Shown here in pieces: positions 5,252 to 34,402 of a stretch of 64,000 nt of DNA (its first letter is position 1; each line of letters opens with the position of its first letter). Below the pieces are notes generated by a model. The model ran no database searches. It was not told the DNA's origin and saw nothing but the letters and a program-made list of their open reading frames with translations. The translations under genes were made by a program, and so were the position numbers. This stretch comes from Bugula neritina. Lineage: Eukaryota; Animalia; Bryozoa. Location of the stretch: the NCBI GenBank assembly GCA_964035545.1, contig OZ037769.1, positions 7,855,929 through 7,919,928 of the forward strand, given 5' to 3'.

Positions 5252-8200
5252 GCTAGATTTAAATTAAAAGCACATATATAACGTATAATATAGTACACTA
5301 TTACATTCCTATATTCTAAAGCATGGCCATTTTCATTGCACTGTAAGTGATAAATGAAGCCAATGACAAAAACTATCTTTTATTGGTACTGACTACTGTG
5401 ATATGACAGCATGTCTGAAAATTATACAGATGTGGTACAAATTGATAACAAATTCACAAGATACTGAAGAGAGATTTTGATTCAAAAGTACAGTTCAAAA
5501 AATAGCATTTATCTTTACGACTCATACTGCTTATTTGAGTATACATTAAATAGAATGAGTGTGAGTGATCACCTATTTTATATTTCCATGAACATCACAC
5601 TAAGCTACTAGGCTAATAGCCCACAAGACAAGTGAAAATATCTATATCACTATTAGCATTTGCATTGTGCCTAACACCTTGGTCTTTTCAATTGAACCAG
5701 AGTAGTGTAAATTGAAACTCAAAACAATATGCGTTTGTATTGATGAAGTCTGAAGTCTTTTTGGCTCAAGACTACGAAGAACTGAGCAGTACAAGAAGAG
5801 ACTCCCAAAATGATTTAAAAAAACAATAATATCATAACCTATGTTGAATTTCAATACCCCTTAGTCTGTATGTAAAATATTTATGCATATTAAGTACAAC
5901 AACCAGCAGTCCACAAGCTTTGTAAAAACATGCTGTTAAACTTTTTATTACTGTTATTGTGGCATACCTACAAACTCATAGTCAATCATAGTGTACCATA
6001 ATTTGCCCAAAGCCAATTAGGAAGCTAAATACTTGCAATACTGATGGTGATACTCAAAGCCATACTCATACTGATGTTCTTGCCTAGTCTCATAGTCAAA
6101 GAGTGATAGACTTACAGGAATGGCTATAGTTACACTTAGTTTTACCGATAATTATTTTTGATACCCATACTGAGTTACACTAATATATTTGATTGCTATA
6201 CTTTTGAACAGCAGTATAGTCTAGACTCTAGAGGCACAGCATTAAACTATTAGTAATTTGATATTAATATTTATAGTACTGGTCATAGTTAGTGTCATAA
6301 TAATAATAAATAAATATTATTCTTTGTTATACCATCACCATGACCATCTTATTTACAATTTAAGTTTATTATACTTATAGCATAGTTTAGTTGCAGAGAT
6401 AGTCATACTCATAGTGATCTGGGTACCCTAGTGATACTGATAGGGAATTAAATTTAATAAAACCATCAAATTCTACTTATGCTTCAAAGCCACTGACTTC
6501 ATCACTTAAACGTTTAATCTTACAGTTGTTAATATTATCTATGCCTACTCAGTCCAAATCTTGCGGCTGAGACTCGTTAACCATACAGTAGAATTTGAAA
6601 TTCAAATTGATTTGCACAACCAGTATGAGTATGACTCAAGTATCAGTATGACTATGAGTATCACTATCAGGATCACATTCACAATCACTGCCAGTGTGAC
6701 TGTGAGTGTCTTAAATCATCTACAGACTACATATTTCAATGATTGTTGTCATGAGTTGCATTGTTCAACAGCATGGTGCTTTTCTATTTTTCCTAACATT
6801 GAAATTACGTAAATCTTTAAGAACTACCGTACGATGATAAGAAATTACGCAAAATCAAAGGCTGTAGTGACTGCCGAGGAAAACAGGGGCGTGTACTTGC
6901 ACAATGTCAAGGCCAGTGTGAATTGTCACGATAGCTATGACGATGACGGTCCAATCATAGATGTGGTTTAAAATGTCAATGGTAATTTGATGCGAGGAAT
7001 TGGAATACCACCAGTTTTATTCCTGCTCAATGCCTGGATGCACATGACTAATTCTACCTATTAGATGTAGTGTGTAATAAAACATCAACTTGCTCAAATC
7101 TACATAGAATTTATGTTTTGCTGCTACAAACACAGTCATATGTTGGGCAAATTAAATAACTTGTTGCATGCCATCAGTGGTTTTGATTTGTTGCCTTTTT
7201 ACTATTAATACTGTTAAACTGAAAAACTTGCAAAACTGTGTTGGTATATTTTACTTCATTCATTTTAACATCAAATAATTAAATGCATTAGTATATCTGC
7301 ATATAAATGCATATTATAGTTTGTCTGCAACAAAACACTAGTTTTAAACCTGCATGATACTTATCACAATTATATGTGATATAATTCAAAATTATACCAG
7401 CATATCTGTTATAATTACATTCATTTTTGCAAGGAAAGAATCAAACTGCTATTGCCTCAATTTTTTGCATCGAAAGTTTGATTTTTGTAGCCAGAAAACA
7501 TAAAACCACTTTAGTAAAGTGTACAGGCATGTGCATGAAGCACTGTACAAAGAGGCTTTGTCAACTATTACAATTATAGTAAGAAACAGTGTTAGATTCA
7601 TCTGCTCAGTCTACAATCCCTGTGGCATTAAAGGAGAAAATTTGTCTAATGAAGGTACAAAATAAGTCTGTTTCCACTCCTCTGCCATAGCCTTTATTCA
7701 CAGAGTGCATATAATGTAGCCTCAATAAATGTTAGACAGGGTATGCCGAAACATATATAATGGTCATAAAAGTATTGTCATGTTTATTTGTTACAGAGAA
7801 ACTCTTGAAGGCCTATCATTTATTCATATATAGCATGCAAGAAGTAGGATAACATCTAGATCCTAGGCCATTTTAGCACTGTTTTACCGCATGCTCATTT
7901 ATATCAGCTGACACTATTTATTACATAAATTTTAAAACAAAACTGTGAGTATACTATAAAAAGAGTTAGCAGCAAAATAACTCAATATTACATGCATGTA
8001 AAATACAAAAAGAGAAGACAACTCAGAGTCACAATTATATAAAATGGTAAACAAAGAAGATGACAAGATACTCTCAACTTTTTAGTAACAACAACATTGA
8101 GCTATTGGCAAGCATGAAGACAAAGTATAGCACCACATAATATCTAAAACAAACTTTATATTATCAGAGAAAAAGTTTTACGCAGCAAATAAATAACGCA

Positions 8201-8377: not shown

Positions 8378-11300
8378 CTAAATAGAGGGGGGACGATCAT
8401 CACGGTGACTAGGAGACTGATCAGCGTGTCCAGTTTTACGCCGAGAATTATACTTTTTTGACTTTTTACTAGTATATTTCCGGGGTTTGCCTCCATAGTA
8501 TATCTTTCCATCGGAAGTCTCATATTTACCTCCATATCTCGTGGCTTTTTCCTCAATAGATGCTGATACATTGTGCTCAGGTGTATCTTCCTTGTTTCTC
8601 AGGCTGAGTTGTGGTTTGGAGTATGTTTGAGGTTGAGGTTTAGACTCAACTACAGCAGGTTTAGTGTCAGCATAATGTGGCTGTAACTTAGTGGAGGAAG
8701 TGTAAGGTCGACCAGAGACGGGCTGGTAGTAGGAGACAGATGAACCGTAGGCTGGTGTGTAAGAGGGTGTGGACTCATACCCACTGTTACCACTGTATCT
8801 ATTATAGTCTGAGGGGTGTGACACACCGTAGGTATTGTATCCGTGTGAAGCAGTACCTCCATAGCCATGTGAACCATACCCGGCATGTCCTCTGTAAGAA
8901 GGGTGAGTTTGCTGACTCCCATAAGACGTAGGGTTTACATTATAGCTAGTACTTGCACCAGCGTACTTGGATGGTCCATATCTTGAATCAGAAGTATTAT
9001 AGTTGGGTTTTTTATACCTGTCCGGCTCTTTGTATGAGAGAGCATAGCTACTAGAACTTGGATCACCGTATGATGTCTTGGCACCTGCATATCTTTTAAA
9101 CCTGGATTTTGTTTTCTTTTCAGGTTTAGAACTACGAGATGGTTCATATTTGGTGTAGGATGAATCGTACTTATTTGTTGGTTCACTGGGTTGATAAATG
9201 CTATGCTTGCTAGCAGCTGGATAGTATGAGAAATTGCCTCCACTTTGTTGTCGAGGAGCCGGATAAGTCTGGGATGGATAATCGAATTGTGAAGTTTTGC
9301 TACCACTGTATGTTTTCTTTGCAGGATTTTTCACATTTGGGTCATCCTCAACGACAAATATATAGGTACCTGTAACAGACACATGGACATGCATCAGCAC
9401 ACCTACAAGTTTTAGCCTTTATAATCTTAAATACTATTTATCAAAGCAGGTGAATTTATTTATTGGAAAGAATTGGGTAAGTAAAAAAACCTCCATAGAT
9501 TTTGAAGAAATATAGATAGGTTGCATTAATTACAAACAGCCATCATTTCTTGTGTGACGATTTAGTGCAAAACCAACAAGAAAAACCCTGACAGTAGTCT
9601 ATTGCTCCGGGTGTACAATTACTTTGTACTATATAAATGTTGTATTGGGAGTTAACTTACCTGTCTCATAATCCCACTTAGGTACACACCTCTGTCTCGG
9701 CTGTTCACTCTCTTTCTCTGCGATATCTGATGAAGAACGTGTGGCGCTATCAAATTCCAGCATCTCTACACGCTTTGTGGTATTTTGCGGAGTTTTATTT
9801 GCAGTAATGTGACCTGTGTCTGCAGGTTTATTGAGTTCAACAGTAGATGTAACATTATCATACACTGACGGTTCCTTGTGGACAGGTGCAGGGGGCAACT
9901 GTTCTTCACTACTAGCTAAACTCAGATTAGATTTATTATCTTCATTTGCAACATCAGGTGGAGGTAACCCTGCAAATGTAGCCCTTCTAGATAATTCTCT
10001 ACGCTCTTGCCGTGACAATTGTTGGTTATTATCTTGATGATTGTTGCTTCCACCAAGCTTCTTGTCTACCGCCACCCTGCCACCAAAGGTAGCCTGTCTG
10101 TGCAGTTTTCGAATGTTAGAGTCATTGACGGGCGTCTCCTCATGCTCACAAGCTAAAGAAGAATTGTTTGGCATTAGATTAGTTCTGACTATTTGAGTTG
10201 GGTTTTCAGTCTCTCTTTGGTTAGAAGGCTGAGTGAGCTCTACTGCAGGCAAGACAGAGAAAGTGGCGTTACGATGTAATTCCTTAACTTCCTTCTTATC
10301 GTCACACGTTGGACTAGGTTGCAGCTGTAGAAATTCTTTATAAGAGATACCTGCAAATGTCTTCTGCTTGCGCAATTTCTTCTTTGGTAATCCGGTTTCA
10401 TTGTCGCCGTATCCTTGTCTCTGTTCGTGAGATGAGCTGATATCAACACCGTCCAGGTTGCTTTCGCTAGTCTTACTAGAGTTATCAGATAATTCAGCGT
10501 GTGGTTTAATTGTTAAACTTCTTGTAGGTTTATTGTTGAGTGTCTCTAAGCTACTGTTAGAAAGAGATAAGGACAGCACGGATTCATGTAACTCACTTCC
10601 ACCCTCCGCCAGGGCTGGTGAGAGCTGAGAAACTGAAGTATTCTGTACATGAGATTCATTTAGAGTAGGTGCAGGTGAAGGCATGTCTTCTTGCAAACTT
10701 TTCTCCACTCCTGAAAAAAAAATGACATTCAACATTTATAAAACTCAAGTAAGTTTATAGTCACCATCCCTGTGAGAACCTTTGATGGAAAAAGTTTTTG
10801 TTAAATCGGGCTAAGGACTTATTCAGATGGGACAGAGGAGCAATTATGACTGGATACTTTTTTTTAACATCACCAATGGCCTTTGTCAGGGTTCGAACCG
10901 ATGACTTCGTGCTTACTAGGCAAACGCTCTAACCCCTAGGGCCTAGAGCCCTAGACCATCGCTGCCCCCTGACATTCACCATTTATATAATTTATTAATT
11001 AATTTATTGAGCACGTAGCAGCATGCAATGATAAATTAATTGGTTAAAATAACTATTTCAATATAATACGCAATTATCACAACAAATAATATTATTATAA
11101 CGTATAATACCTCACAACAATCAGGACATTTTCTAATGATAACTTATTCAACAAAAGTGGGAAATTTCTTTTGCAACGGTATTTCTAGTTTAAAATAGTC
11201 GCAGTGTGATGTAAAATGCTTAATTTCAGTCCTTGTGTCATTCCAGTTCATTTATTACATGCCCTTTTTAATACAGGCACAAATATGTAATATGGCATAA

Positions 11301-14300
11301 TAAAACATAATATACTATACAAGCCATCAAGTCAACTGAAAATCAAGGAGTGGCACACCCCAAGACTTACCCAAGGCTGGTTCAATACTAATAGAGTCAT
11401 TTTGCTGTGCATCCACGAAATTATCATCATCAACTTGATTTTCCTCAGGGTAAATATACTCCTGTGCATCATGAAAAACTGGAGTAGCTAAGCTGTCGGA
11501 GTCCGGGGTGTTGATACTAACGCCCTCCCATCCAGAGCTTGACAGCTTCGTCTCACTAGGTTTTTGGGCATTAGTGACAGCATTGCTGGCTGGTACAGAT
11601 GGAACTACAATGCTTTCTGCAGGCTTCTCTTCAACTCTTTCTTCTACGTTTTGTGCTTGCTTCTTCAACCTTTTCTCCCGCCTCTTTCTCCGGGCCTCCT
11701 GTTCCCTTTCTTCCACCTCCTGAAAATAAAACAGAAAGATATTATCTTTATTGCTATTTTATAAAAGCATAGTTTTTGTTTAATTGCTGTCCATACAAAC
11801 CTTGAAACATTCAGCAAAGTAGGTTTAGTTTGTTAGTGCTAAGCAAACTTTACTAACTGATAAGCTACACACTGCATGCCTTATGAGGCATATAGCAAGT
11901 TATAGTTTATAAAGTAGCAATGTTGAACATGGCCTGGGGCAGGCTGCACTGTATTTATCACTGGTGAAGTTCAACCAACAACATAGCCTATTAATGGTAT
12001 TTTATAAGTTACAGCTGGGGCACAGCAAGATTGCTTGAGCTGTTATGTGATTTTTTATCTGATGCTTTAGGAAAGGGACTCAATGTAACACTTATAACCA
12101 TGAGTTCTAACATAAACTAAAATTATATTATTTCCATCTCCTTCTAATTAAGAACGTTAAAATATAACTATATTTGAACTAGGGATTAAATTTCTTAAAA
12201 CCTTACAATTGTTTTTAAACAACAAACGACATGTTACTGCTCAGAATGTATATATGTTATTAATTTATGATCATTTTAACTTTTAAATTAAGAAATGTTG
12301 CATGTTTTGGAACAAGTGGTAATTTTAACGCAATAGTAATAATATTATACATGATGCAAGATGCAGACACGCATGAATGATTCTTACACGTTAAGTTGTG
12401 ATTTCATTGCTATGATGCAACAATTATTTTATTATTGACTTCCAGTTAATAGGAATTAAATACAGGCATGGGATTTGATATCGATATTGTATTTTGTATA
12501 TTTGCCTTGATTCAGCATCAGGGGGTATAGCTCAGTGGTAGAGCAATCGGCTGCAGTCCGATAGGCCCTGGGTTCAACTCCCAGTGCCCCCTCTTTTTTT
12601 TGTGACTCACCAAATTACCAATCACATTTTCTGAGTTTTTATATTTGTCAAAACACTATGAGTGAAATGAAATTAATTTGTAATGATGTACAAGTTCTAA
12701 AAGCATTTCGTTTGAACTAAGATTGAAATGTTCAACTAATAACAAATTACTGAGCTAGCTTTACTTCCATATGACAAAGTGCATAGAATAAAATGCATAA
12801 TTGAGCTTTCATTTAGAGTAACTGATGCCTGATGGCAGCAAACCTAGAAATTGTAGTTAAATAAGCGCAACTCCTAGTTTGAATTTAAAAAGATTTTGCT
12901 GACCAAGCTCTTAAGACTTAAACTGTAACTCGGGATATTATACAATAATCACTCACTGCAGGTTCAACAATCTTAGACTTGATTGTTCTCATCCCGTCCT
13001 CCATGTTGTGAACAGGAAGGTCATGGTCACAACTCTTCTCTGGAGCATGTTTTTCTCTCCCTCCAAAACCTCTAAGTAACTGATCCACCGCTGGAGAGCT
13101 GATCTCTGCAACAAGAAAATTAACGAATGAAACAACATGGCACAACAGAAACTTTGGAAGAGTTAAACAAATATATTTTATATAAATATTGAAATAAATC
13201 TGCCTTTGTAGCCCTTGCCTATTCCATAAATATTAAATATTTGATTTAGGCAGTTTGAAGAATAAGCAATGTGTTAATACATTTATCTCTATACTAACTC
13301 ACTTCATTTCAAACAAAAAATTGTGGCAAGAAATTTCGGCAAAACAATTTTTACAAAATGCTTTATTCTGTTGAATTTAAAGTTAAAGTAATATTCTCTA
13401 AATACAGCCAAGAGTTCAATTTCATAGAAAAATTACCATCAGCTAAATATTATTTTTTACAAACATCAAGCAGCCTAACAGCAGGAGAAGTAAAAGCGTA
13501 TTCTAAGAACTTTTCCAATTCAGAGCAATGAGTTTTCACAGTACAACACAGCTGGACACACCTTTCAACCACAGTTTAATTGCTAACTCCTTATAGAGTT
13601 AGAGCAAAAACACACCATAGCCTCACAGCAGAATTTTAAAACATGTTCCTTTCTGTATTCTATGCCAATGAGGAAAATAAGTTGAACATTTGTTTTCCAT
13701 CCGATCTTTAAACCGGAACAACACGAAAAATACATTTCCACATTTCATAAGCTGCATACTAATGCAGTAGATCATCTTAGTGTCCAAGAATAACTAATAA
13801 TTACCAAGACCACACCATATTACAACTATTTGTGAATCCAGGAACTCAAAATTTAAGCTGCATTTTTCTGTATCTAAGGTTATTTTTAGATGAAGAGTAG
13901 GCCTATATTTAGTTGAAGCTTGTGTTAGTCTTTCTTAGCATTAATATAGAATAAAAACACATACTGCTCCAGTAGTGTTGGCACACCTGCTCTGCTATAT
14001 TCTGTGAGAAACTTACCTGAATATATTCTGTCGACGTCCAGAGGAAAAGGGGAGGAGCCTGCAGATTTGGCTCCGGCCAGAGCAGCTACCTTACTCAGGG
14101 GTGTAACCAGATCATCCTTAGAGGGGGGCAGGTCTGGTGACTTCACCTGGTGTATATGCGGTATGTACAGATGTCATGCAACAAACACTATGGGTTGGCA
14201 TATTGCAGAGGGTTAACGTAAAGCTATTGAGAACATGGATATTCAACATTTTCATAGTATGGCTCAAATAAACTAAATTGGAGAATTAGAAATATTTTAC

Positions 14301-17300
14301 AACTTTTATTGTAGTTATACTCACTGTGTGTATAGTCAACACGGCACTTACTGTGTGTATAGTGAATATAACTATACTTACGGTATGTATAGTGAATATA
14401 ACTACACTCACTGTATGTATAGTGAATATAACTAAACTCACTGTTTCTACAGGAGAAACTCTCGGAGGCTTAGATACGGCTGGTTTCCTGTCAGCTAGAA
14501 TTTCTCTTAGAGTTGCATTCATGTCATCATTGTCAAGATTTAATGCAGCAGCCTGAAACCACACAAAATCAGCAATAGAGTAGCAAATATTCGAAGTATT
14601 TTAGTAGGTTACGATTTCAATAACAAGAAAATGTTCATTTAAATACTGGTTTCTATTACTGCATGTAAATGGATTTTTCATTCAATACTTGGAAACAGTT
14701 GCATCAAATGAAACCATAACCATAAGTTAGTGCAAACGACAATGAAGAAATGGAAATGCAGTGAATAATGCATCAAAAGTTGATAGACTCCCACAATTAC
14801 GTAACTAAGGAATCAGTCTCCAACTTGATGTATTATGTGTACTTTCAGCAGTAACTATAGGTGTGGCATGAATGTACTTTCAGCAGTAAGTATAGTTGCT
14901 AAATGAATACCAACTCTTTTAGCAATTCTCTCTTCAAGGGATTCCAGCGGTGGACTCTCACTGAGAGTAATCTTCTCATCTCCTGCAGCTTCTTCTGGTA
15001 ATTCCTGAGCAGAGGAAACCTGTTCCCCTGTCGCCTCAGGTGCTTGTGGGACTTCTGGTGGTAAATCTGGTTTAGTATTCTGAGTCACACACTCTTGGGC
15101 ACTAGACTGGCTGTCAACTGTAATATAATTATACTCTTCTTGTTAACCCAGAAACCATTACCTATACCCAAAATGTAGATGTATAAAATGGAGGAATAGC
15201 AATACCAGCCTGCTACATGTTTTATGTGCAACCTATACAAGTTCACATTGGAAATTTTTTGAACAAAATTTGAATCTGAATTTGAAGTAGTGCAATAGAC
15301 ATGTGGATACTAAGTGATTAATTTTATACTTGATAACCAAACACAACGAAATGACGTACTCAACTGCATTAATCATTTTTACCATTCCTAATAGTTGCTT
15401 CAGTGTATTCATAAAATAATATGGTCATATGGCTACATCTATAGAGAGATGAATAGAATTTTTTTGGCATTTAAAACTGGGTAGTTCAAACATGAAAAAG
15501 CAGCATGTCACTGTGAACAACAAAATGAAATTATCCATCTTAGAACAGGCTTTTTCTTACCAGGTGGTTTGCTGTCATTTGTCTTTGTTAAATTTTTTGC
15601 GGCATCCATCTCTAACAGTTTGGTGGCAGCAGCATCTGCGGTGATTTCCATCTCGACGACAACGGCAATTTGAGAAATGGTGAACTGTGGGAAGGCATGA
15701 TGTAACTCATTTGCCACCCTCAATGTGCGACGATCATCTAATGAAATAAACAAGTAAGAGAAGTATATAATTGTTATATAAAAGCCATACAATTTTTATA
15801 ATCAACAAATAAGGGTTATACGAAGGCATAAAAGACAGCTTATGACCATAACATTTTGAGCATTTTATCCTTAAACAATCAGAAACAAGATATTTTTATA
15901 TGAAATTAAATTTTTTAGCTGAGTCATAACTTAATCACTTCCCAATTTTAGACAATTTTAAGCTTTCGATTTTTAAGCTGTTTTGTTAAATGCTTACCTA
16001 AAGCCATGTTATTCTGAAAGACTTACGGATAGATGATTTCTTCTCTTGCTCAGTTTCAGCATCAACATTGGTAAAGAAAGAATGTTGCAAGGCTTGTTCA
16101 AGAGTTATCCTATCGGCAGGGTCATATTCCAACATTTTCATAATGAGGTCAAATAATGACCTAGAAGCTTCATCGTCATGTCTGATGTACCTCTACAGAA
16201 TAAATAAATGGTAGATGTTACACAAAATTATATAGTGAAAAGTGGAAACATATAATAAGGTTAATCGAATTAGCATATATAACCTAATCAACATTGTACA
16301 AAATTTAAATAATTAAAAATTGTAAAATATTATCAATGAGCACTGAGTTTATAAGTATAAAATATATTTCATTAGAATATAAGTGACCAATGAGACGTCA
16401 ACCTAGCTGCTGTACGCTGCCAGTAAGAGGACAGCCTTGCCATAGATTTTGAGCAACACTGAGAAAGTAAGTCAAAGGAACCCAATTAAAGGGGTTGGGT
16501 GAACAGAATTTGTAACATTAGCCCACATAACAAAATGCACAGACATACAGTAGAAATAATGTATTGTGTTAGAAACCATAGCAGCAAGTTAAATTTCATC
16601 CATACTTCATGCTCAATGTGCAGAGAACATGCTGCAGAAACTAAGCATTGCCAAAATAAAAGTAGTTGAAAGTATTTTAATATTCAGCCACTGATTCAGC
16701 AATTTCTCATGCCTCCACGACAAAACAGTAGTAATAAACTTACAGCTAGTAATAATAGCCAGCTGAAAGTTCAACCTAGATCAGACCCTTTTAAAATATT
16801 TCAATAAAAAAGTTTACCTTTGACCTGGGAGGAGGGATGTTTTTTCTTTAAAACAGCAGCAAAAGGCAAAACAGGTAGCTGTGTATGAATCTTACCAAAA
16901 TTAAAAAAAATTAAAGAAAACCTGGCAGGGGTTCATGCTAAAAGATTGATATGCTTTGCATGTATATAAATTATGTTTATATGACTTACATATGACCTAT
17001 ATATTGACCTATATATGTCATTGTAAGATCTGATATTTGGTAGATGTGCACTGAGCCACCCAAAACATAAAATATTTAGCATTCTTAGCAGCAAAAAAGG
17101 AGGGGGCTCATGCGTTTTTGTAACATGGAATCGATAACATGTTTACTCAATTATGGTCGCACAAGCAATGAAAGGCAGCCAATTCAAGGTGCAACAGCTA
17201 AGGCCACGAGATTTACACACACTTGGTCATTCTACAGACAGCAAACTTTGCAAATTGATTTAGGATTTCACATGCCTACACTTACAAATATCGGCTTGCA

Positions 17301-20300
17301 CATTTCCCGAACATAACGACCCGATGTACTATTAGCATCCCAGTCCAATCGGCCGTGATAGAAAAAAGGCATCCTGTGAGAACCAAAATTGAGTTTAAAT
17401 AAAGTTGTTTACCAAAAGCTAAATTAATTTTGTTTGACTAATGATTGTAAAAGAAATTATGCAACCAATGACAAATATATATTTTATGTGTTATGAAGAG
17501 TTATCATGACCCTGGTGGATAGTAATGGCTGCCTAAATGAATTTGGAGTTTCGACAGCGCCAAGAGAGACATCATACCACAAGTGCCTGTTTAGAATTTT
17601 ATGGTAAAATATTATTAAAGTTTAAAAAGACAGGATTTCAAATGCCTGTGTCAGTCATCACTAAATTGCTGTAAAATTATAGTGAGAGTTTTTTTTCCAT
17701 GATAGTAAAACATGAAATGTAAAAATGCTGACAGCTTAGCATTGCCATACAGGTGTATCACCTTTAGTTGAATGCGATAGAGTTCTACCAAACTTTGGTA
17801 GTAAGAAAAGCTTGTATGATATGCTTTTGGAGAAATTTCTGCAAAATCTTCAACTTTTAAAAATTTAGCATCTCATTGGGGTGGAAGAAATTAATTCAAA
17901 TGAGAGATTTTAAAAACATGGTTTCGGATTTTTGTAAAATTTTAATGTGCATTTTAAACAAATACCTACTTAGAAAAAGATCAATTCATGATATCTACCA
18001 AGTTTTAAATTTAGACGCATTTATAGAACTTTACTGCAATAAAATTGACACACATACCAAACAAACAGTCATTAAAGCTACCCGTATTTTTGTCAATTAA
18101 CTTTCAATAGTCAATAAACTATTTGAATATTTCAAACATTGAATGACAGCTGAAAATTTTCAGAAAGAAAGACAGCAAATATGAAACATACAAAATGTTT
18201 AATAACTGGTTGTTGCAGCAGAATATTGTTGAACCCTGCAGTTTTGAAATGATCAAATTCTCAGTGATTTACCTACTTGCTTCAGCAAAATTAACACTGA
18301 TACTTCTTTCAAGTTCATCAGTGATTGTAGCCCATGCAACACGTTTTGTACTTGAACATATATAAAAGTTTAATTTAATTTCAACGTTCTAAACATGAGT
18401 TCTCCTATCACAATAGTACGCTACAAAGCAACTACCTCATTGAATATTTTCTGATATCAACCAGAGACAGTTGAAGAATGCTGAAGATGACCTGAACTTG
18501 AACATGCAGGCGGAAGTCTAACTAAGAGGATATCAACATCATTTCACTTTGACAAAAGTACATTAATCTCAGATTGTGACAGCTATAATAATTCAAGGAT
18601 GTAGTTTTGTACTATCAAATAGGACTAATTGTATTAGTGGTCATCACATTTTACATGAGCAAAGCAGCCCCGGTTGATAAGGAAGAAAGTGCATTACATT
18701 CGCAGAATACTAACTTGGTCCTTCTGGCCATGCGATATGGAAACTGGCCTAGCACACGCTCCATCATTGCCAAATGTTCCAAATCATCATGTGTCTGACA
18801 AAATATAATGATTTCACTACCATAACTTTACAACACTCTCAAGCTATCTGATTACCAACAACTGTAACTTCGAGGAATATCAATAAATTATATAATGATT
18901 TAATCAGCTATACAACAATCAATCAATTTATTAAAGATATAACAATTACACAGTAAAAATAACTCATAATTTATAGCTGAAATGTGAATTCATAACATAA
19001 GATAGGCAACAAGAAATTAGGTTGTAGTTTGTTGTTAACTTGTTGAGTTTTCTATGTACTAACCAGAAACCTGCAGGCTAGATATATACTAAAGTTGTAA
19101 CCTATTCCTTTGTTATACATAAACACCTTAGAAGCAGTTCATTTTATGTTGCCATGTTGTACACTTTACACCTCGTAATATTTAATAATACTAATATTTA
19201 AATCCTAACTATTAACATGTGTATACAAAACACAAAATTCTTGCATGATTTTATAAGAAATCTAAGTTTACCTGAAACAGTGTATATCCAGTATATAATT
19301 CAAACATTATACATCCAATACTCCACACATCACAGGGATGAGACCAACCCAGCTCTGTAACATAACAGTATCAAAGGTGGAGGTTTAGTCCATTCCATAT
19401 CATAAGGTGATGGCATTGAAAAATCCACTAAGTTAATCTTAAAAAAACACTAAACTAAAGGCTGATAGAATGCTATTGCTTGTCACTTGCTCTGCAATAG
19501 TCCCAAATTCTAGCTTCAAGGCCAGCACTATTTTTTATTAAAATATTGTACAGCCATCAATAGAGTTTTAAAAACAAACTTATACCAATGAGACGTTTTT
19601 ACTATACTTGGAAATGGCTAGATACTTCAACAAAGTCGCCCAATAAAGCACTGTTAAGAACTAAACCCACTTGACAGTGACTCAAAAATACGAGTAGTTA
19701 AAGCAGGTGATTTAGCTTGCAAAACAACAATAAAATGGAATAGCTCAGTTCGTTTCTATTGGATAAAACAGTGTTGGGCTAAAAACTGCACAAAAATTTA
19801 TTGCATGGAAATAATCAAATAACAATCTAAACTCAGTGCAATGTATATAGCACAGCTGCAATAATAGCATAATAGTCTAGGATTGACCTGAGTCGAGTTT
19901 GTACAACATTCTCAATATATTTTGAGCCTAGTATGCTTGCACATTTGTACAAACACCCACTCTCTTGCAACATTCACTAAGGTCAGTTTCACTGATGTGT
20001 TCAACCCTTTAAAATTTAGTAAAATTGAGTGATACCACAACAGATAACTCCAGATGCTCTGCAGTGCCAGCAGATACTATGGTACTATATATAGCTAACT
20101 CGGGGTGATACCAGGTTAAGTATAGGACACTGTGTTACTAAGACGACACTGTGTTACTAAGAGGTGTGTTACTGACCTAAGATGACCTCAGGTGCCCTGT
20201 AGTGCCTCGTAGATACTATAGTACTGTGATGTTCATCATCGAAAGTAGCAGAGCCAAAGTCAATCAATCTACAGTCACTACTCTTAACAATCTTCTCTTT

Positions 20301-23300: not shown

Positions 23301-26300
23301 TTATACTAACATAGTAAACACTGGTAGCTATTCCTACACTCAATACTCACAACTTTCCTTCAGGGTCCATCCTATTGATCTTCTCCAGAACGTTTATTTC
23401 CAACATGGCTGCTTCCCTGTACTTGGCAACATTCTTTATAACTTTTAAAGCCAAGGGCGGATGCTGATCATTTCTAAAGAATAAAATACATTCTATATGC
23501 TAAACATAGTGGGCGCAGCTATGGTCTAGGGGTTAGAGCACTGGCTTAGTAAACACGACAGCATGGGTTCAATCCAGAGTAAAGGCTATTGGTGATATTA
23601 GGAAGAGCATCCAGCCATAATTGTTCCGTTGCCTCATTTAAATAAGTTCGTAGTCCGTTTTAAAAAACCCCGTTCCACCAGGGTTTCTCACAGGGAGTAA
23701 CTATAAACTTGTGTGAGTTTTTATATACTAAATATAGTGTAGGCATACTGATTGGTCTACAAGAAGCTGCTACTTGCACCGTGCAACAACTTGTTGCCTT
23801 TCAGCCCAGACAAATTTTGCCGTAACGTCGATAGCCATTTTTCAAGTGTCCGGGTTGAAGTTCTCAAAGCCCGCTATTGGGTAAGATTTATGACACGCCA
23901 TTGGACATTTGTATCCAATGTCTCCCTGTCCAATAGGAGCTAGACGTAATTTTTTTAATCAAGCAGTGTTTGATCCTCGACGTACAGTAAAGTCGTACGG
24001 TTCAGTGCCAGACATTTTTAAAAATGGCTGACGTTTGCTGTTACGGTCGATGTTGTGGCAACATCTGTCTGGGCTGTTTTGTCTCCTAGGAGAATTAGTA
24101 TGAGTAATGTTACTTACCCAACTAAATACTTCACTTGTAATACTCTCCCAAATGTACCTTCACCAAGACAGTCCACCACTTCATCTACTCATATAAACAA
24201 ACTCTGTACAGGTTACACATTGTGCACATATTAAGAGTTATAATGTTGACTGGCATAAATACAGGAGAGTTTAATAATTTTAATTATTTTAGTGGCTGGC
24301 AACTATAATTATTGCTCAAGACTGTTAACAAAGAGCTAATCTTCGCATCAAAATCTTAGAAACAATTAATTGCTAGAAATTAGATTATGAAAGGAATTTA
24401 GTTAAAATAAACAACACACATCAACTAATCTACTGTTTGATGTACTGCTTGTGTAGCTTTAATTCATTACTATTTTCTACAACTGCAATTCATGATGTTT
24501 TCATGAACCAAACCATGTGATTAGGTAAAGGCTGTATAGAGCCTCCTAGACTAATTGTTATTAGTTTTTCTACATGTCAGAATGATGTATACCCACATCT
24601 TTCATCAAGTATGTCTCCAGACTTGTAGAGCAGATGTCCTTCTGAGTCATTCAACACATGAGCAGGTCTGGAGTCCGCAGGAGAAATCTTATCTTCTTTC
24701 TGTAATATAAAATTGTAATAATATAATAATAACAATAATATAACAGAAAAAATAATATAATATAGTAATATGTAATTGCAATAATATATAATATTATAAT
24801 AGTAATAATAATATATAATAGTTAAAATAATATATAATAGTTTAATAACAATATATAATAGCAATTATAATAGCAAGAATATATTATAGTAATAATATAC
24901 AATAGTAATAACATATAATAGTAATAATATAATATACAATAGTAAAATATCATATGCCATAGTACTAGCAGACATTCTAAAATAAGTGCTTGTAAGACTG
25001 AAAACATATAATCTACACAAACTATGCACAAGCACTATGGTATCCCAGCAGAGCACAGACCTATGTAGCTTACTATGCTATGAATATGCCCAACAGGTAT
25101 TTCTACCACCATTACTGTGAGAGTACATTTGTTCACTTTCACATACTATGAAAGTAAACAAATGGGTAAAACGATTAGCAAGTTGCAACTTTACAAAGCA
25201 GGAAACTGTTAGTATTATCAATTCCTGGTATTTGATATAAATGTACATTTTGGGCAATGTTTTATAGTCCAAAATAAATACACAACACGTAAACATGCAA
25301 CAAAACTACAATACTGCATCTACCTTGAAATGCAGTGAAAACCACTGCAAACCCAAGCATTTCAGAAACCTCTGCAATAATTAAACCAATAAATTAGTCA
25401 GCTGAGATTGGAAAGACATTTTTAAAATATAAGGCAAAAGAGCTAGAGTTGATTCGGGTATAGTAAAGTGGTTAATTCACTTAGCAAAACACATAGGAAA
25501 GTTGAGTCGAATGTAGCAACAATTTCACTCAAGCTTTTAAAAAAGAGATAGAATTGCTTGCGGAAATGCAATTGACCAAGGTAGGTTTTGAGTTTGGTAG
25601 AATATGTTAAAATACCATTCTTTAAAACGCTGTTAATCACAGAATTTAATTTAACAGAACTGTGCTATATTGTGCAGAGTAATGCTAATTAAATTATCAA
25701 AGTCTATTGATCAGTTACATAGGTGATCACCCGATAAGGGAATTGTATTAGTTTTGTTTTAATGTTTTCTCAATCTTTAGTTTAAATGCCTACTTTGGCA
25801 CGTCAGCTTTTTCAACCTATATAGTGTTTCCCAGGAGTTGGTAGGAAGGGATGTGTAGTTGAATAAGTTGAACAATTTGAAGTTGAATAATAATGTATGT
25901 ATTATTATATGTATCTACTGGTGAATGTAAACAAAATGTATGGAACCAGATTGTATTTTATTCTGAATTTATTGATATATGTTTCCAGACAGTTTGAAGA
26001 GTGAAGTGAGGCTTACTGGTCACAAGTGAATTTAAGATAAATACCCCCTCTCCCCCTCCATGCACACACTCTTACACAGGTTGCCAAGTGGGACTAGCAT
26101 TAATAATCAACAAACTGGTTTGCTGTACTGATAGTTTTATAACCCTTTGGTATTAGCAGGGTTGATTATTGCTATATTAGTTGTGTAGTATAACTGATCT
26201 AATTACAGAAACATAATGTGTAGTACAGTTCTAGTAGAAAAAGCAATACATGGTAATGTTGCATATATTATTATAGATCACAATATCGTCATTCTACGAT

Positions 26301-29300
26301 GTATCACATCAAAACTTTAAGAGGAATTTTTTAAAACACTTTGAAGCAATAACTTTTATTAGAGTCACTAAACTTGACCACCTGTATAATGTTAAAATTT
26401 GTATAATTCTATTCTCACAATATTAAGAAATCAAACTATTTACTAAAAGGCCTTAGTTTTTTTTATTTCATGAAATTTCAATGCCTGGTCCAGACTTTGG
26501 AAATGTCAGCAGCACTTGATGTAGTATCATCAGTGTGAAAATTCCTTCAGCCTTACCAGTCCGTTACAGTTACTACATGTATTCTTTCTTGTATCACCCG
26601 TAAAGTTAGTTGATTTAGAAATAAATGTTCAACTGGTGACAGTAATTCTAGAGAATTTTAATATCACTCTCAATCATGTGCTGCTTTTCCTCCACAACAA
26701 TATGCATCACATGCTACAGCAGTTACTGTTGGCAGAGTTGAACAGCACTACTGATGGCAATAAAAAGAGATCATATTGTAATCTGCATCAAGCTGATAAT
26801 ATGTCATCAGTGTAGATATGGCAGCAGTGTAGATATGGCAGCAGTGTAGATATGTCATCAGTGTAGATATGGCAGCAGTGTAGATATGGCAGCAGTGTAG
26901 ATATGGCAGCAGTGTAGATATGTCAGCAGTGTAGATATAGCAGCAGTGTAGATATGGCAGCAGTGTAGATATGGCAGCAGTGTAGATATGGCAGCAGTGT
27001 AGATATGGCAGCAGTGTAGATATGGCAGCAGTGTAGATATGTCAGCAGTGTAGATATGGCAGCAGTGTAGATATGGCAGCAGTGTAGATATGGCAGCAGT
27101 GTAGATATGGCAGCAGTGTAGATATGGCAGCAGTGTAGATATGTCAGCAGTGTAGATATGGCAGCAGTGTAGATATGGCAGCAGTGTAGATATGTCATCA
27201 GGGTAGATATGGCAGCAGTGTAGATATGGCAGCAGTGTAGATATGGCAGCAGTGTAGATATGGCAGCAGTGTAGATATGTCATCAGTGTAGATATGGCAG
27301 CAGTGTAGATATGGCAGCAGTGTAGATATGGCAGCAGTGTAGATATGGCAGCAGTGTAGATATGGCAGCAGTGTAGATATGACAGCAGTGTAGATATGGC
27401 AGCAGTGTAGATATGGCAGCAGTGTAGATATGGCAGCAGTGTAGATATGGCAGCAGTGTAGATATGGCAGCAGTGTAGATATGGCAGCAGTGTAAATATG
27501 GCAGCAGTGTAGATATGGCAGCAGTGTAGATATGTCATCAGTGTAGATATGGCAGCAGTGTAGATATGGCAGCAGTGTAGATATGGCAGCAGTGTAGATA
27601 TGGCAGCAGTGTAGATATGGCAGCAGTGTAGATATGTCAGCAGTATTGAGAAGGCCTGTACCAGGTATAGCACTGCTCCAGAGGTTAGTGCAGAGGGGAG
27701 AGGTAGGCAACACTCCACCTCAGCCACACATATTATATTATTCTGTATAGACGGCACTATTTCTTAAATGTACAACTCTTCATAGTTTCACTGTTCAGGT
27801 GGTGGGGAATTACAAAAGATAAACTTTTTCAGATAAAGCAAACAATTGAGAGGGTTAATAATGAACAGTTGAAGCTTCCAGTTTTATATATAATTATGGA
27901 ATAGAATCACCTCATGTTGATTAACTGTATGAACAGCTGACACACTTACACACACTTACACACACTTACACAACTCTGATGAATTGAGGATTGCTTTCCT
28001 ATGAGGTAATTACCTCATACATAGCAGCTCCAGTTATTTATGGTAAAAGCTTAAGTTGTGCAAAACATGATATAATTAGTGCATAATATTTTATGAGCAG
28101 ACTGTGAAAGCCAAGCCAAGGTTGGCAGAACATTAATTAGTGCTCTCTGGGATTATTTTTGTTGATTACTAATATACTCTATATGGTATAAATAAAATAT
28201 ATATACTATGTAATGAATAATCAATTGTTGGGTAATGATTCATGTAGTAAGACTACTATAAGTGTATGACTAGGTCAGTACACCTAGTATTGCCTACGCC
28301 CTACATCAATAGAATTCAGAGAAAATACATTCAAGCTGACTTTATTCTAAGAAAAGATGTTCCTGTTGTTATTTAGTTGGTTTTAGCACATTGTGTCTGC
28401 GTAGCTTAGACTAAGTTATTAGACAAACAAACAGTTTTTTTTCTGGAGGCTAAACTGTACTGACATGAGAGTGCTCCCTCTATATCTCACTAAGCTACAG
28501 GTCCCAAAACCTCAATTTGTGACATAGTAGAATACCATGTTTAACTCACGGATCTGTCCCTATACACACATACATGAGCCACAAAACAGGGGTCCAAGCC
28601 TTTCTCGTAACCTTTTCGTGAGGAATGAATCCGTGAGATGTGGAGGGAGCACTGCACTACATGTTGGTTGTTAGTCTATACAACATACAAAGCTGTAACA
28701 TTCTGCTACACTCTACAGTTTGAAAATAATTTTACATGTCTATTTGTTTGTTATTTAGACTCAACATTTTGATAATTCCTCGGAATGGTCTAGAAATTAA
28801 AAATATATCAGATTTTATATAATCCAGCCAGGGTTATTTCTGCATTAATGAGCTGAGACCAAACAGTCAACAAATAGACTGCTCTCTATTAGCAGTAATT
28901 GTTATCAGCAAATGACCCATTATTGTCTATCAATTATAGGTAGGAAGTCAACAAAATCTTTATAAGTTTCAGGCTAGACTCTGTTACAGCCATACTGAGT
29001 TTTCAGTTGGATAAAAGGCCTCTGTGTCTACTTGAAGATCACATCAACTGGCCGCCTAGGGGCAACCACTCAACCCAAACACAGTGTAGTAGCCACTGAT
29101 TGGCTGAGAAGTTAGGCCAGATAGTAGGAGTGTGCTAGGCTGTCCAGCAGGTGAGAGTGAGACAGGTAGGCTAGTTACAGCATGCCATAAGCATTTACAT
29201 TACAGATTAGCCTGAATTTCTGACCTGGAGTAATCAGCACACAGCACAACTATTGCCATCATATTCAAGCAACACAGGTGTTCAAACAAATTTACAATAA

Positions 29301-29632
29301 GTTAGTGGAGTATTTCTATAAGCAGCCAGAGTCGGAGGTGACTGAGTGCAGTAGTTTGGGGTTCACAATCCCAACTCCAAACTCAAGATCACAAACCACT
29401 GCACTCATCCACACCCAACTCGAAGTTGCTTATAGACAATTTCAAGTTAGTGAGCTGACACAGTATCGTTTACTTTTTCCCACTGTATTTTATACTGCTG
29501 GAAGGTGTAACTACAAACCTTGGTTTTGGCTTTTCCTTTAGCCTTAGTTTTAGAAGAGCCATTACTGGAGTTAGCAGAAGGGGGGCCTGATGAGGCCTCG
29601 CTAGATGGAGGGCTGGACAATTTGTTCACCAT
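8378..29632 (-). CDS. CLK: CDC2-like (LAMMER/CLK/Doa family) dual-specificity kinase with a long C-terminal extension
   Basis: Kinase-region exons: 24699-24597, 24184-24118, 23473-23351, 22496-22406, 21874-21799, 21205-21111, 20306-20177, 19354-19272, 18794-18715, 17373-17286, 16192-16027. They encode [37 protein letters not shown] and [11 protein letters not shown]. Putative first coding exon 29632-29519 is less certain. Tail exons 15737-15561, 15117-14915, 14552-14442, 14146-14017, 13105-12957, 11719-11371, 10710-9661, 9369-8378 are all phase-compatible. Kinase identity is high confidence; attachment of the tail is moderate. Confidence 0.8.
10741..10969 (-). mobile_element. tRNA-derived SINE (family A), copy 1
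   Basis: The minus strand starts with a tRNA-like head (TGGTCTAGG...GGTTCGAACCC). The body is homologous to 23512-23721. It is flanked by an 18-bp TSD, TGACATTCA(A/C)CATTTATA, at 10723-10740 and 10970-10987. Confidence 0.8.
12521..12592 (+). tRNA. trnC-GCA: tRNA-Cys (anticodon GCA)
   Basis: GGGGGTATAGCTCAGTGGTAGAGC... Anticodon arm ATCGG-CTGCAGT-CCGAT, T arm CTGGG-TTCAACT-CCCAG, acceptor stem GGGGGTA/TGCCCCC, followed by an oligo-T Pol III terminator. Confidence 0.95.
14319..14445. repeat. ~30-bp tandem repeat (4 units) built on a splice donor
   Basis: Minus-strand unit ACAGTGAGT-TAGTTATATTCACTATACA(T/C), spaced 30, 30, 30 and 27 nt. Confidence 0.85.
14665..14745 (-). repeat. Short dispersed repeat (family B)
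   Basis: Reverse complement of TATGGTT..GGTTTCATT.GATGCAACTGTTTC.AA..ATTGA.TGAAAA.TCCATT, also seen at ~36240, ~49855 and ~52310. Confidence 0.65.
20127..20173. repeat. Short 18-bp tandem repeat
   Basis: GACACTGTGTTACTAAGA, about 2.5 copies, next to a CLK splice donor. Confidence 0.7.
23211..23316. repeat. 27-bp minisatellite, ~4 copies
   Basis: ACTAACATAGTACATATATACTCTTAT repeated. Confidence 0.85.
23512..23721 (+). mobile_element. tRNA-derived SINE (family A), copy 2
   Basis: Head GGCGCAGCTATGGTCTAGGGGTTAGAGC...GGTTCAATCC. The body matches 10741-10969 in reverse. TSD-like TATAT(G/A)CTAAA(C/T)ATAGTG at 23494-23511 and 23722-23739. Confidence 0.8.
23802..24075. mobile_element. MITE / non-autonomous DNA transposon related to 38708-39008
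   Basis: Terminal inverted repeats CAGCCCAGACA...TGTCTGGGCTG, with subterminal inverted CCGTAAC/AGCCATTTTT. The interior is homologous in reverse to the element at 38708-39008. Confidence 0.7.
24703..24950. repeat. AT-rich low-complexity (AAT/ATA)n tract
   Basis: Degenerate ATA/AAT/AGT triplet runs. Confidence 0.8.
26801..27644. repeat. 17-bp minisatellite, ~49 copies
   Basis: Unit GTGTAGATATGGCAGCA with interspersed GTCATCA/GTCAGCA variants. It explains the repetitive ORFs at 26858-27757. Confidence 0.97.
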
Positions 29633-32600
29633 GTTCAATCAGGTAATCCATTGAGTAAAACTGATTTTACATCCATGGCAAATGGTCTAAGAACTGTAAA
29701 GACATAATTTACCATTACTGTGTATGTACTTATATCTTCAGCTTTCACAGAGGACCTCACCTGTCCCTGGTTTGTCAGCAGCTACCTGTTGAGTCACAAC
29801 TCAACGTATAACTCCACTCCAACATTAATTCAATACTGAGTAGCTGTTTTACAGCTGACAGCAAGTTACCAATCTATGCCAACTTTTACACTCATGCAAC
29901 AAGGCAATAAATTCTGACACATTAAAATTTACTTTGCCCTCCAGTAATATGCCACTCAAATACCTCTTCTGCAGTTATACATTATGGGAGAGTCTATTAA
30001 CTTTTTGAGTCAGTAGTAGTAAACACCAGGAGCACACACGCAACTAATTGTTTTAGTTATAAAGACTAGACTAGAAGATAAGGTGAAGAACTTGGAAGAG
30101 ACATTTTAAAGATCTTTTAAGTTGGTAACATGAAAAAGGATACCTATATTTGAAACTATCTTAGAATATGTCAGTAACGGAACACATCTCAGAATGTGGC
30201 AGTAACAGAACATAGTTAAGATATTTTGATATACTTTTTTGTTTGTTGAACTCATATTCCGCACTGCATTGCATTGTAGTTTAAATAATAACAATGCTTT
30301 CATAATTATTAGAAATTATTAAAAATTTCACATTGTAAATTAGGTACAAAGTAAAATATGCTTTAGTATTAAAAATACTGTATTTCTACTGTTAGCAAAT
30401 TGATCTGCAATCAATATAATATACCTTGATGTAGTTTATTACAATATTGTCTAGCAGCTCCTGCTACTAACAATGGAGTTTAGACCTGAGATATATTACG
30501 CAGGTACCACTATAAATCCTAGATTATTATAGCTTGGGCTATAACCATCAGAGCTTTATAATTATTTCAGAGCAGTTATACCAACACCCTAAATTAACAA
30601 GGTGTGAATACTACTTTAGTGCATTTTTAACAGAAATAGAAAGGAAACCAAATTATAAGTAATAAGAGATTTTTAATTAACCCTACATGGTAAATGTGAA
30701 CTGCATCAAACCTTTACAACTATTGTCTATAAACTAAGACTAGGAGTTAGAATGTCTGCTAACTAAAAATTTAACATGTTTTGTCAAACTTTAAGCAAAC
30801 TGTTTAAAAAGTAAGCTATGAGTATAGTTAGTGTAAAGTAAACCTCAATTAAATACGTTATATTTTAGCCTAATAATCTGATAAATCTGTCCTTTTCTCC
30901 TACTTTGTGACTAATTTCATGTAGCATTTCAATTATAATATTCTGTTTTGTGAAGGCTAAATTACTCTTCAGGTAAGCTCATTCAGGGCATTAGAAAAAA
31001 ATCCAGGAGTTGAGGCACATAAAGCAGTATGCCTTAATCCAACAGGGATATATTTTGTTTGGGGAAGTTGTTTAGGGATATTTGCAACCTTAGGCTTACG
31101 AAACAACAAAAATATATATATTATAGCATATTTAGAATGCTATCATAACTTCAACTGGAACTAATGTTGCTGGACTGCTCTTATAACAATCTAGAAATGA
31201 TTGCCAGAATACATATATAACAATTATTATGGATAAAGATAACCGTTTGACTATTACTAGTCTTTTTGTGAATGTCTATTAAAAATTAAATAATGTGTAA
31301 GAGTAACTGTAAGTGTAATAAATGACAAGATTGACAATTAACAGAACTTTAATTATAAGCCTAAAGTATCTGAATCTGAGACTGATAGATAGGCATAGAC
31401 TGATGACAAAAATGAATATTACCATGTACTAATATAAAAATGACTAAAAAATTGAATAATTATTATTTATTGAATATCAAGGTAGTTTTCAGAGAACCAC
31501 AGACTTGGTGAATGCATTTGTATAGAGCCTACCTATATATACTTGTTAATAATATTAATTTGATGACTATTACTATTAGCATACCTTATACCTATAAGTA
31601 TAACTGTAAGCTTAAAATAAACAAATTAAAATAAACTATGGCTCTGGTCTCTGAGTCTGTTTAACTATCAGTATCACTATTACTATAATCAGTTCAGTCT
31701 GAGTATCACTACCAGCATCACTATCACTATCAGTATCAGTATAACTATAACTATAAGTATAAGTATGCACAAACTCAAACTGAAACTGACAAAGAGAAAA
31801 TCAGCAGAATCAGAATGAAAATTTAAAGATTTACCTTTTCATCAACTTAAATTATTCCTTTAAAAACTATTAGTATTTGTATATTGTGGTAAGTTATTAC
31901 GATTCCATGTCTCTGTGAGTGTAAGTAAAATCCCTCCTTTGTAATTTGAGCAGCCTCATATTGCCGGAAATGCTAATGAGTAATGCATGATCTGAAAGCA
32001 GACTAGATACTAGCTACATTCTCCAACTATAATAATAATAAATAAAGTAGGATAAGAGAAGGTTAAAGGTCATCTAACATCATTCTAACGATAAGAACAT
32101 GCTGCATATTGCCTGTGTTGCATTTGTTAGCAAAGCCACATTAGCCTGAACATATTGCAGTGAACAGTTCACTGAACTGCGTGTTATAAGGGCTACCAAT
32201 AGCATCATTCCACAGCTTGTCATTTTGTTACAGAATGTAGAAGCTGACATGGGCAGTGAATTGTTGAATAGGGTAAAAAGTGCACACAGTGAGCAAATTT
32301 TTACCCAGGCTAAAAAAGTATCTTTTACTACCTAGCCTACTTGTAGGCTATAAAGGTGCAATAAGCAATAATTTAATACAATTTTAAACCTTCAATCTTT
32401 AATTTTTCAAGTATTGTTTGATTATATATAATATATATAAATTTGTAACAACATGCAACCGCCTGAATTTATAAATCCCTGCAGAATATATTACAAAAGC
32501 TGTCTGCTTCATAAATGGATGGATACCATCAACACTATTCTCCTCCAACATGCAGTGTGAATTGAAATGGATGAAGGAATGAAGCAATGAAATACCCATA

Positions 32601-34402
32601 GCTCCCATTTACTTAGTTCATGGTTAAAATTGCTTATGCCTGATAGCAAATGAAATGTGAAACACAGTTCAAGCCATCAAAGCAGCTAAAGAATGTTGCA
32701 CCTACAACCCAAACCAACGTTCTTATTCTATTACTCTTGCTAACTTTAAGGCTACATGACTATCAAGTTGAAAAATAGTGAAACCCAAGTGCCTATAAAA
32801 GATTAACAACAGTCTTTCTGCATCTCCCATGACTATCCATTTACAACGGTAGTGCATATACGCCCTACATTAACATCCTTCGTAACTGAGTCTTATAATA
32901 AGGTATTATTTTATTTACACTCTACGGTGTATAGCATAAAGGAAGAATCATGTATGAAAGTGCAATGCTTTAGTGTATGTTGTGTGTACCATGACTGGTC
33001 TATACTCAAACTATCAATACGCGTCTAGTTAATCATTCTATCAACAAATGAAATATTTTGCTCACATCTTCTAGTATAATGTATTTATTTGAAAATGTTT
33101 CTAAACAGAGCAGCACATTTATTCATAGTAAAAATTTATTATGTATTGAATATAATATTTTGATTGAAATAATTTTTTTGTCAATTTTGACAAAAAAGTT
33201 AATAGAAATTAACAGCTACATCCAATTACTAAATTTGTAAGTTTCATTCGAGACAAATTATTCTTTTTAACTCAAAAACAATTATAGCAAATTGACAAAG
33301 CTTGTCACGGTAACTGCATATATAGTAAATATAATAATCTTGCAGTATATGACTCATGCAGCCATTTTTTGGTGTTAGTTAGGCTTGCCTGAACCTATAC
33401 AATTATATAGTTTCATCACACTTTGCTGCATGCTTGCATAAGAAAAAGTAGCACTGATGGAGCTTTTTATTTTCACAGCTTCAATAGGCTGAGAATCGCT
33501 GGGTTAGAGATATTTAAAAGTTGTTTCTTAAACCAAGAGTAGGCAACTTCTCATAAGTCAACATAATTATTAATGGGACAATAACTTTAACATCTTTTAT
33601 AATGAAACTTTTTCACTGCTGCTGTTTCAATCAACTCATTGTTTAAAGTTTATAAGTGATGCAATATATCGTAATGCTATAGTTTCAATAAAGATGGCAG
33701 CATACTACATCTGGCATAATTTGCCCAGGTATGTGCATTCCAAGCGAAGACACTGCAAACTCAACATATAAGCAATAAAACAATGTTATGTATGATGATA
33801 GCCTAGTTGCAACTGCTCTTAAATACCCACCAATAACCACCAGCCATGAACAACACTGCGTTGTGTATAGAAACTAAGCTAAGTATGTAGGTAGTTAAAA
33901 ACCCATAGCTCACTTTTTGTTTTGATTTGTGCTAAAAACTCAATATCTATCAAGACCCTTCACTTTGTTGCCAAAAATTAAATTGCACGACCTTGACGTG
34001 CATGGTGCATAAAATTGCCAACTTGAAACTTTGCAGTGTGTAAAAAATATTTGCAAGAGTTTGTAGCTCTTGAGAGCTGAGTACATATGTACTAATGTTG
34101 TTTAAGCTGCGTGTAGGTTCGGCAATTTTCGAGCAAGCCTAAAACATAAGAATGATAACTCCAAATTGAAGAAATGAAGCAAAGCAAGAAATGCTTACAT
34201 TGTGTAATAATATGTTTTTAATGTCCGTTGTGGAACGAGGACCATTAGCTATTAGATAAGAACACTCATACTAACTAAATAACCACATTTACATGTTTGT
34301 GGCTAGCAGATAATACTTTAACTAGTGTTGGCAGAGAAATCCAGTAGTTACCAGCCAGCTGACAGTAGCTAGTAGAGAGTACAAATACATTGGTTGCCAA
34401 TC

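Follow-up and report, generated by a model that had tools for sequence, protein, structure and literature searches.

A CLK/LAMMER kinase of the bryozoan Bugula neritina with a long, spliced C-terminal tail that begins with a CUE-like domain

The window analysed here is a 64-kb stretch of contig C5 of the 216-Mb genome assembly of the cheilostome bryozoan Bugula neritina, and all coordinates refer to it unless another contig is named. On its minus strand it carries a gene for a kinase of the CLK/LAMMER family, referred to here as type B in order to distinguish it from its paralog on contig C4, referred to as type A. The type-B gene consists of 20 exons between positions 29632 and 8378, all introns of which have GT-AG ends and compatible phases, and the joined exons, with the frame built from the window sequence, form a single reading frame of 1458 amino acids (about 163 kDa) with its sole stop at 8378. 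The first 405 amino acids comprise the N-terminus and the kinase domain and are followed by a tail of 1053 amino acids. The probable first coding exon (29519..29632), which was assigned on the basis of sequence and frame, has an in-frame stop 5' of its ATG and belongs to a serine-, lysine- and proline-rich N-terminus of 52 amino acids with one RS/SR dipeptide and no RS (arginine/serine-rich) domain. A scan of positions 24700-41000 revealed no RS-rich exon, and the same scan detects the RS exons of the paralog. The type-B protein therefore departs from the metazoan CLKs in two respects: the long, disordered, RS-rich N-terminus, which the paralog has, is replaced by these 52 residues, and the protein does not end shortly after the kinase domain, since the 1053-residue tail is spliced on. 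Within the first coding intron lies a long tandem repeat with a unit of about 21 nt (window ~26800-27640), which produces spurious open reading frames.

The kinase domain is encoded by eleven exons (24699-24597, 24184-24118, 23473-23351, 22496-22406, 21874-21799, 21205-21111, 20306-20177, 19354-19272, 18794-18715, 17373-17286 and 16192-16027). The glycine-rich loop (GEGTFG), the lysine of the VIK motif, a further 20 residues of kinase motif sequence and the activation segment up to APE are all present, as is the LAMMER motif, an 11-residue signature at residue 300. The exon containing this signature has its best matches in the PDB with CLK2, CLK4, CLK1 and CLK3, and for this exon as well as for the paralog the closest solved relatives are the CLKs and not DYRK or SRPK. 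The type-B gene is predicted to encode an active CLK/LAMMER kinase.

The tail is encoded by eight exons with a total of 3161 nt. A previous sequence-only reading of this DNA had described eight in-frame exons from 15737 to 8378 of about 3160 nt after the last kinase exon, a first junction ATC C|AT GAT between 16027 and 15737, and a weak donor AGA|GTTGGT at 14915, all of which agree with the window sequence. The intron between the kinase and the tail (15738..16026) has a phase-1 donor, C|GTAAGT, and if it is retained, the frame stops after nine further residues. Tail exon 1 (15561..15737) encodes a CUE-like three-helix domain and tail exons 2-4 (15117-14915, 14552-14442 and 14146-14017) an acidic linker rich in alanine, proline, serine and glutamate. 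Tail exon 5 (12957..13105) contains a conserved motif of 15 residues that is common to the paralog and is named GGREK here, and tail exon 6 (11371..11719) a short stretch rich in arginine, lysine and glutamate, probably a helix, which is followed by a low-complexity region. Tail exon 7 (9661..10710) encodes 350 amino acids of low complexity and poor conservation; the probability of finding no stop in this exon by itself is about 3e-12, so that the length of the tail frame is not due to chance. The terminal exon (8378..9369, stop 8378-8380) comprises a tyrosine-, serine- and glycine-rich disordered region and a conserved basic C-terminal module. A tRNA-Cys(GCA) lies antisense within one of the tail introns (12521-12593, plus strand), and a tRNA-like element, possibly a short interspersed nuclear element, is found near 10960-10860.

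The splicing of the tail was assessed with contigs from four RNA-type runs (X1-X4) from four studies, aligned over window positions 12850-18820, with the run type recorded as a guess. Since introns are removed exactly at their CT..AC ends, the contigs represent spliced RNA. The 16027/15737 joint, for which junction reads had been suggested as a check, is listed as a joint for X1, X2 and X4 and is supported in X3 by loose ends that match, so that runs from all four studies show it, and one X1 contig extends across tail exon 1 and the two kinase exons before it. In X4 the depth of this joint is 237.5 as against an exon depth of 239.8, contig depth being a rough measure, and the listed piece that crosses the 15738..16026 intron has a depth equal to the background of other introns. 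The kinase joints 18715/17373 and 17286/16192 and the tail joints 15561/15117, 14915/14552, 14442/14146 and 14017/13105 were also seen, with the weak donor at 14915 being used in three runs. Further downstream, the loose ends at 12956 are an exact match to positions 11689-11718 of exon 11719, and a 2942-nt X3 contig has the length expected if it contains the remaining exons together with about 290 nt of untranslated region. The junctions 11371/10710 and 9661/9369 are based on their splice signals, on the length of this contig and on the same exon order in the orthologous loci L013 and L018. The architecture of a short N-terminus, a kinase and a very large tail, as proposed earlier, is thus real and spliced. 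Divergence between the RNA and the window reaches about 10% in the tail exons, and the RNA therefore comes from another haplotype or a sibling lineage. Among the 40 best-supported differences, which were the ones listed, all six in tail exon 1 are synonymous, and about half of those in tail exon 2 change the residue. A short intronic element at ~14660-14735 is matched in each of the four runs by numerous unrelated contigs of high depth and is probably a common repeat.

The predicted structure of tail exon 1 is a three-helix domain with a predicted local distance difference test score (pLDDT) of 83, the top fold matches of which are of the CUE/UBA type, with a root mean square deviation of about 1 A over 40 residues, although no single match reaches an E-value of 0.001. 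The match to the Pfam CUE family (PF02845) is weak, with an E-value of 0.15 and 12.2 bits as opposed to a gathering score of 21.1; the paralog reaches 16.1 bits, five of twelve relatives match weakly, and the best family member has an E-value of 0.0078. In a profile search, the CUE domain of Tollip was matched with an E-value of 0.008. The hFP motif (as AFP) after helix 1 and an LL-type motif in helix 3 are both present, and the phenylalanine, the proline and the first leucine of these motifs are invariant in 11 sequences. Both motifs are needed for ubiquitin binding by CUE domains (PMC6688830). Judged by sequence and model, tail exon 1 thus appears to encode a CUE-like domain with both ubiquitin-binding motifs; it has the three-helix bundle and the hFP and LL motifs in common with the CUE domains of Tollip, gp78/AMFR, CUEDC1 and SMARCAD1 but, unlike these named domains, scores below the Pfam gathering score.

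Four modules of the tail are conserved: the CUE-like domain, the GGREK motif, the arginine-, lysine- and glutamate-rich stretch and the basic C-terminal module. Tail exon 5 matches the profile of the paralog type with an E-value of 1e-14, tail exon 6 corresponds to the ARRKARxERRERQQ block found in the paralog family, and the basic C-terminal module of about 75 amino acids is homologous to the end of the paralog, with a profile match to the paralog tail at an E-value of 8.5e-12. L013 and L015 also share the end of tail exon 4. The terminal exon, for which 12 relatives with 35-49% identity were found, consists of 14% tyrosine, 18% serine and 8% glycine with a conserved lysine- and arginine-rich end; most of its model has a pLDDT below 50, apart from a small helix and a hairpin at residues 269-291, so it is predicted to be mostly disordered, and the exons between are low in complexity. 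Across its 1053 residues the tail contains 9 RS/SR dipeptides. Searches of the tail against Pfam, PDB sequences and the ESM Atlas, in which single exons or stored proteins served as queries, as in the other remote searches, found nothing besides CUE. Two candidate features were discarded, namely four RxxTF-like repeats in the exon 10710-9661 as conserved sites of autophosphorylation or autoinhibition, which are absent in the orthologs L013 and L018, and a PDZ-binding end, which suits type A (T/S-S-hydrophobic) and not the type-B gene. In one relative (L010, 10001-11449, P0010) the type-A tail contains the GGREK motif twice, which suggests a self-contained binding module.

The genome contains exactly two CLK loci, type B in the window and type A on contig C4, and both have a CUE exon after the kinase. 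Type A begins with RS-rich N-terminal exons, which are followed by the kinase and a single tail exon of about 385 amino acids that carries the same four modules in the same order; over the compared exons it is 71% identical to type B. The sequence-only reading had asked whether a conventional CLK paralog also exists, and a second CLK with an RS N-terminus is indeed present, but it carries a homologous tail as well. The best PDB match of type A is CLK2 (E-value 2e-162), aligned to residue 496 of 499. Its donor lies within A|GT AAG AGT, which is followed by an arginine codon and TGA, so that the frame read through the donor ends in S-K-S-R-stop, close to the site at which human CLK2 terminates. 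This ending is found in five of five type-A loci with silent variation of the arginine codon (CGC, CGG, CGA, CGA and AGA). Because selection acts here on codons past the donor consensus, the short form of type A is taken to be translated, and type A probably gives rise to a classic kinase as well as a tailed one through a switch of the last exon. The read-through endings of type B differ among L013, L014, L015 and L017 and no conserved short end is present; as these endings are unrelated and the RNA favours the tail, type B looks tail-only. GenBank holds models of type A, namely KAF6027785.1 (733 amino acids, with the tail) and KAF6017403.1 and KAF6038919.1 (353 amino acids, without it). These are automatic models of the paralog and not of the type-B gene, are named "hypothetical protein", and no CUE annotation was found on them, so that the tailed type-A protein was already known as an unnamed model. 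One protein encoded in the genome has a counterpart recorded under the name Bugula neritina with an identity of about 95%. Several small contigs of the assembly (C66, C11, C204, C174, C256 and others) contain intronless kinases in which many TAA and TAG codons and almost no TGA are read through, probably a contamination with ciliate DNA (code 6).

Tails of both types were found in other samples. The type-A tail has about ten relatives with 31-47% identity. In all retrieved contigs that extend far enough upstream, the tail is immediately preceded by CLK exons; this was seen in L010, L012, L019 and L020 for type A and in L013, L014, L015 and L017 for type B. The two types form separate groups in an unrooted tree (support 100), and three samples contain both. 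The relatives are probably bryozoans, judging from their similarity to Bugula genes and from synteny, as in several assemblies the type-A CLK is immediately followed by a gene with a SAM_PNT domain (L008 ~7470-7680; L010, L019 and L020). Since the tail is common to both paralogs, it is older than the gene duplication, unless it was copied between them, and the features specific to type B would be limited to the lost RS N-terminus and the expanded tail. The apparent absence of the tail outside this lineage is based on one profile search against 1.84 billion representatives, in which the 18 matches were all tail exons or pieces resembling types A and B; the clustering placed the tailed GenBank protein under a tail-only representative, and tailed proteins could likewise sit under kinase-only ones. 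No stand-alone tail gene was found, neither in this genome, which has no third copy, nor in the protein searches.

The neighbourhood of the type-B gene contains two further genes on the minus strand. Upstream lies the end of a P2X receptor gene with a duplicated last exon (~38190-43500), and downstream, at ~5300-2370, a gene that by eye resembles enoyl-CoA delta-isomerase (ECI2-like) with a peroxisomal SKL end.

CLKs are among the most architecturally constant kinases. According to a pan-eukaryote survey from 2025, every CLK homolog is built from a disordered N-terminal region and a kinase domain; the survey makes no mention of bryozoans or of C-terminal extensions (PMC12795684). The earlier statement that CLKs normally end soon after the kinase is in line with this survey, which describes no tailed form. 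Compared with human CLK2 and the metazoan CLK1-4, type B has all catalytic and LAMMER motifs in common and differs in its missing RS-rich N-terminus and its CUE-bearing C-terminal tail of 1053 residues; the type-A short form ends near the end of CLK2. The long isoforms of Doa in the fly (105 and 225 kDa in Drosophila) and MADD-3A in the worm Caenorhabditis elegans resemble type B in being LAMMER kinases with a long non-catalytic region, and they are cytoplasmic and act outside splicing (PMC4849719), which by analogy makes them a possible functional precedent for a non-splicing tailed CLK. However, their additional region is N-terminal (PMC12795684) and that of MADD-3A is without a recognised domain (PMC4849719), whereas the Bugula region is C-terminal, is reached through a last exon chosen by splicing and begins with a folded CUE-like domain. 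In the literature, no description of a tailed CLK, of a CLK with a CUE domain or of a bryozoan CLK was found. The tailed CLK is a real, expressed and conserved new variant of a known kinase family and not a new enzyme class.

We propose, with a probability of roughly 55%, that type B is a single gene for a predicted active CLK/LAMMER kinase with a built-in targeting tail, which would act outside splicing and probably in the cytoplasm. Gene structure, splicing, conservation, fold class and the paralog support this directly; from them we infer the order of events, the ligand, the location and the substrates. An ancestral CLK of the lineage would have taken up a donor inside its last codons (A|GT AAG AGT CGN TGA), the use of which would add a terminal exon with the CUE-like domain, the GGREK motif, the basic helix and the basic C-terminal module. 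The gene would then have been duplicated after the capture of the tail, with type A retaining the RS N-terminus and both endings, and type B losing the RS region and the short ending as its tail grew to about 1050 amino acids in eight exons. A type-B kinase without an RS domain might not reach the SR splicing factors in the usual way, and the tail may replace RS-based targeting, in that ubiquitin or ubiquitylated complexes would serve as docking sites for the CUE-like domain, with partners being bound by the short motifs. The outcome would be a non-splicing, probably cytoplasmic CLK. A more specific version is put forward tentatively, as we consider it less probable than not: bryozoans would have evolved a ubiquitin-sensing CLK, in which a last-exon switch first gave a CUE-targeted form and one duplicate then became RS-less and tail-only and acts on ubiquitylated complexes outside splicing.

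Several observations weigh against this proposal. The short, RS-less N-terminus is read from the genomic sequence alone, no one contig covers the whole mRNA, and the tree has no outgroup. The CUE scores lie under the Pfam threshold, and not every CUE domain is a ubiquitin binder, as described for CUE1 of SMARCAD1 (PMC6688830). The deletion of the long region of MADD-3A did not abolish its function (PMC4849719), and basic clusters in the tail could serve as nuclear signals.

This last point leads to the best-surviving alternative, according to which the tail holds the kinase in the nucleus on splicing substrates, with the basic and the tyrosine-, serine- and glycine-rich regions replacing RS as a speckle- or RNA-binding module and the CUE-like domain binding a non-ubiquitin partner. 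The composition of the terminal exon with its conserved lysine- and arginine-rich end would suit such a module, the arginine- and lysine-rich helix could be a nuclear signal, and the top fold matches include a CUE domain known to bind a ligand other than ubiquitin (PMC6688830). We regard this alternative as a serious competitor but as less likely than the proposal above, as there are just 9 RS/SR dipeptides in the tail and type A has an RS domain in addition to an optional tail, suggesting that the tail contributes something different. A true fusion of a CLK with a downstream, pre-existing CUE gene of the CUEDC, Tollip or TAB2 type, which has since diverged past recognition, is less probable still. 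The CUE domain needs some source, its best sequence match is the Tollip CUE, and the type-A tail is one 385-residue exon that begins at the domain boundary; however, no third copy exists in the genome, all tails with enough upstream DNA follow CLK exons, and no similarity to known proteins extends beyond the CUE part. Of the lineage-specific gene fusion considered in the sequence-only reading, the lineage-specific element stands for the RS loss and tail expansion of type B, but the fusion itself is not supported, as a stand-alone tail gene was found neither in this genome nor in the protein searches, and the capture of a new terminal exon via a donor in old C-terminal codons fits better. That the tail is a separate downstream gene, the joined form being occasional read-through or a modelling artefact, is already largely refuted and very improbable: no one molecule spans the whole transcript and the kinase could end in the intron, but the 16027/15737 joint occurs in four studies at nearly exon depth in X4, in both paralogs and also in other species the splice acceptor of the tail exon keeps the phase of the kinase, and the sequence before the CUE domain holds no conserved start codon.

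Under the more specific version of the proposal, that of a ubiquitin-sensing CLK, the bryozoan protein would represent the first CLK in which a folded domain at the C-terminus serves targeting. The bryozoan CLK tail suggests an undescribed way of aiming a kinase at new targets. It is a lineage-level variant in a non-model phylum, and a conserved and expressed exception to the CLK architecture with a plausible origin that is still readable as a donor in the old C-terminal codons, with both endings apparently retained in one paralog. The two genes thereby form a natural experiment on the role of a LAMMER kinase that lacks an RS domain and on the possible guidance of LAMMER kinases by ubiquitin.

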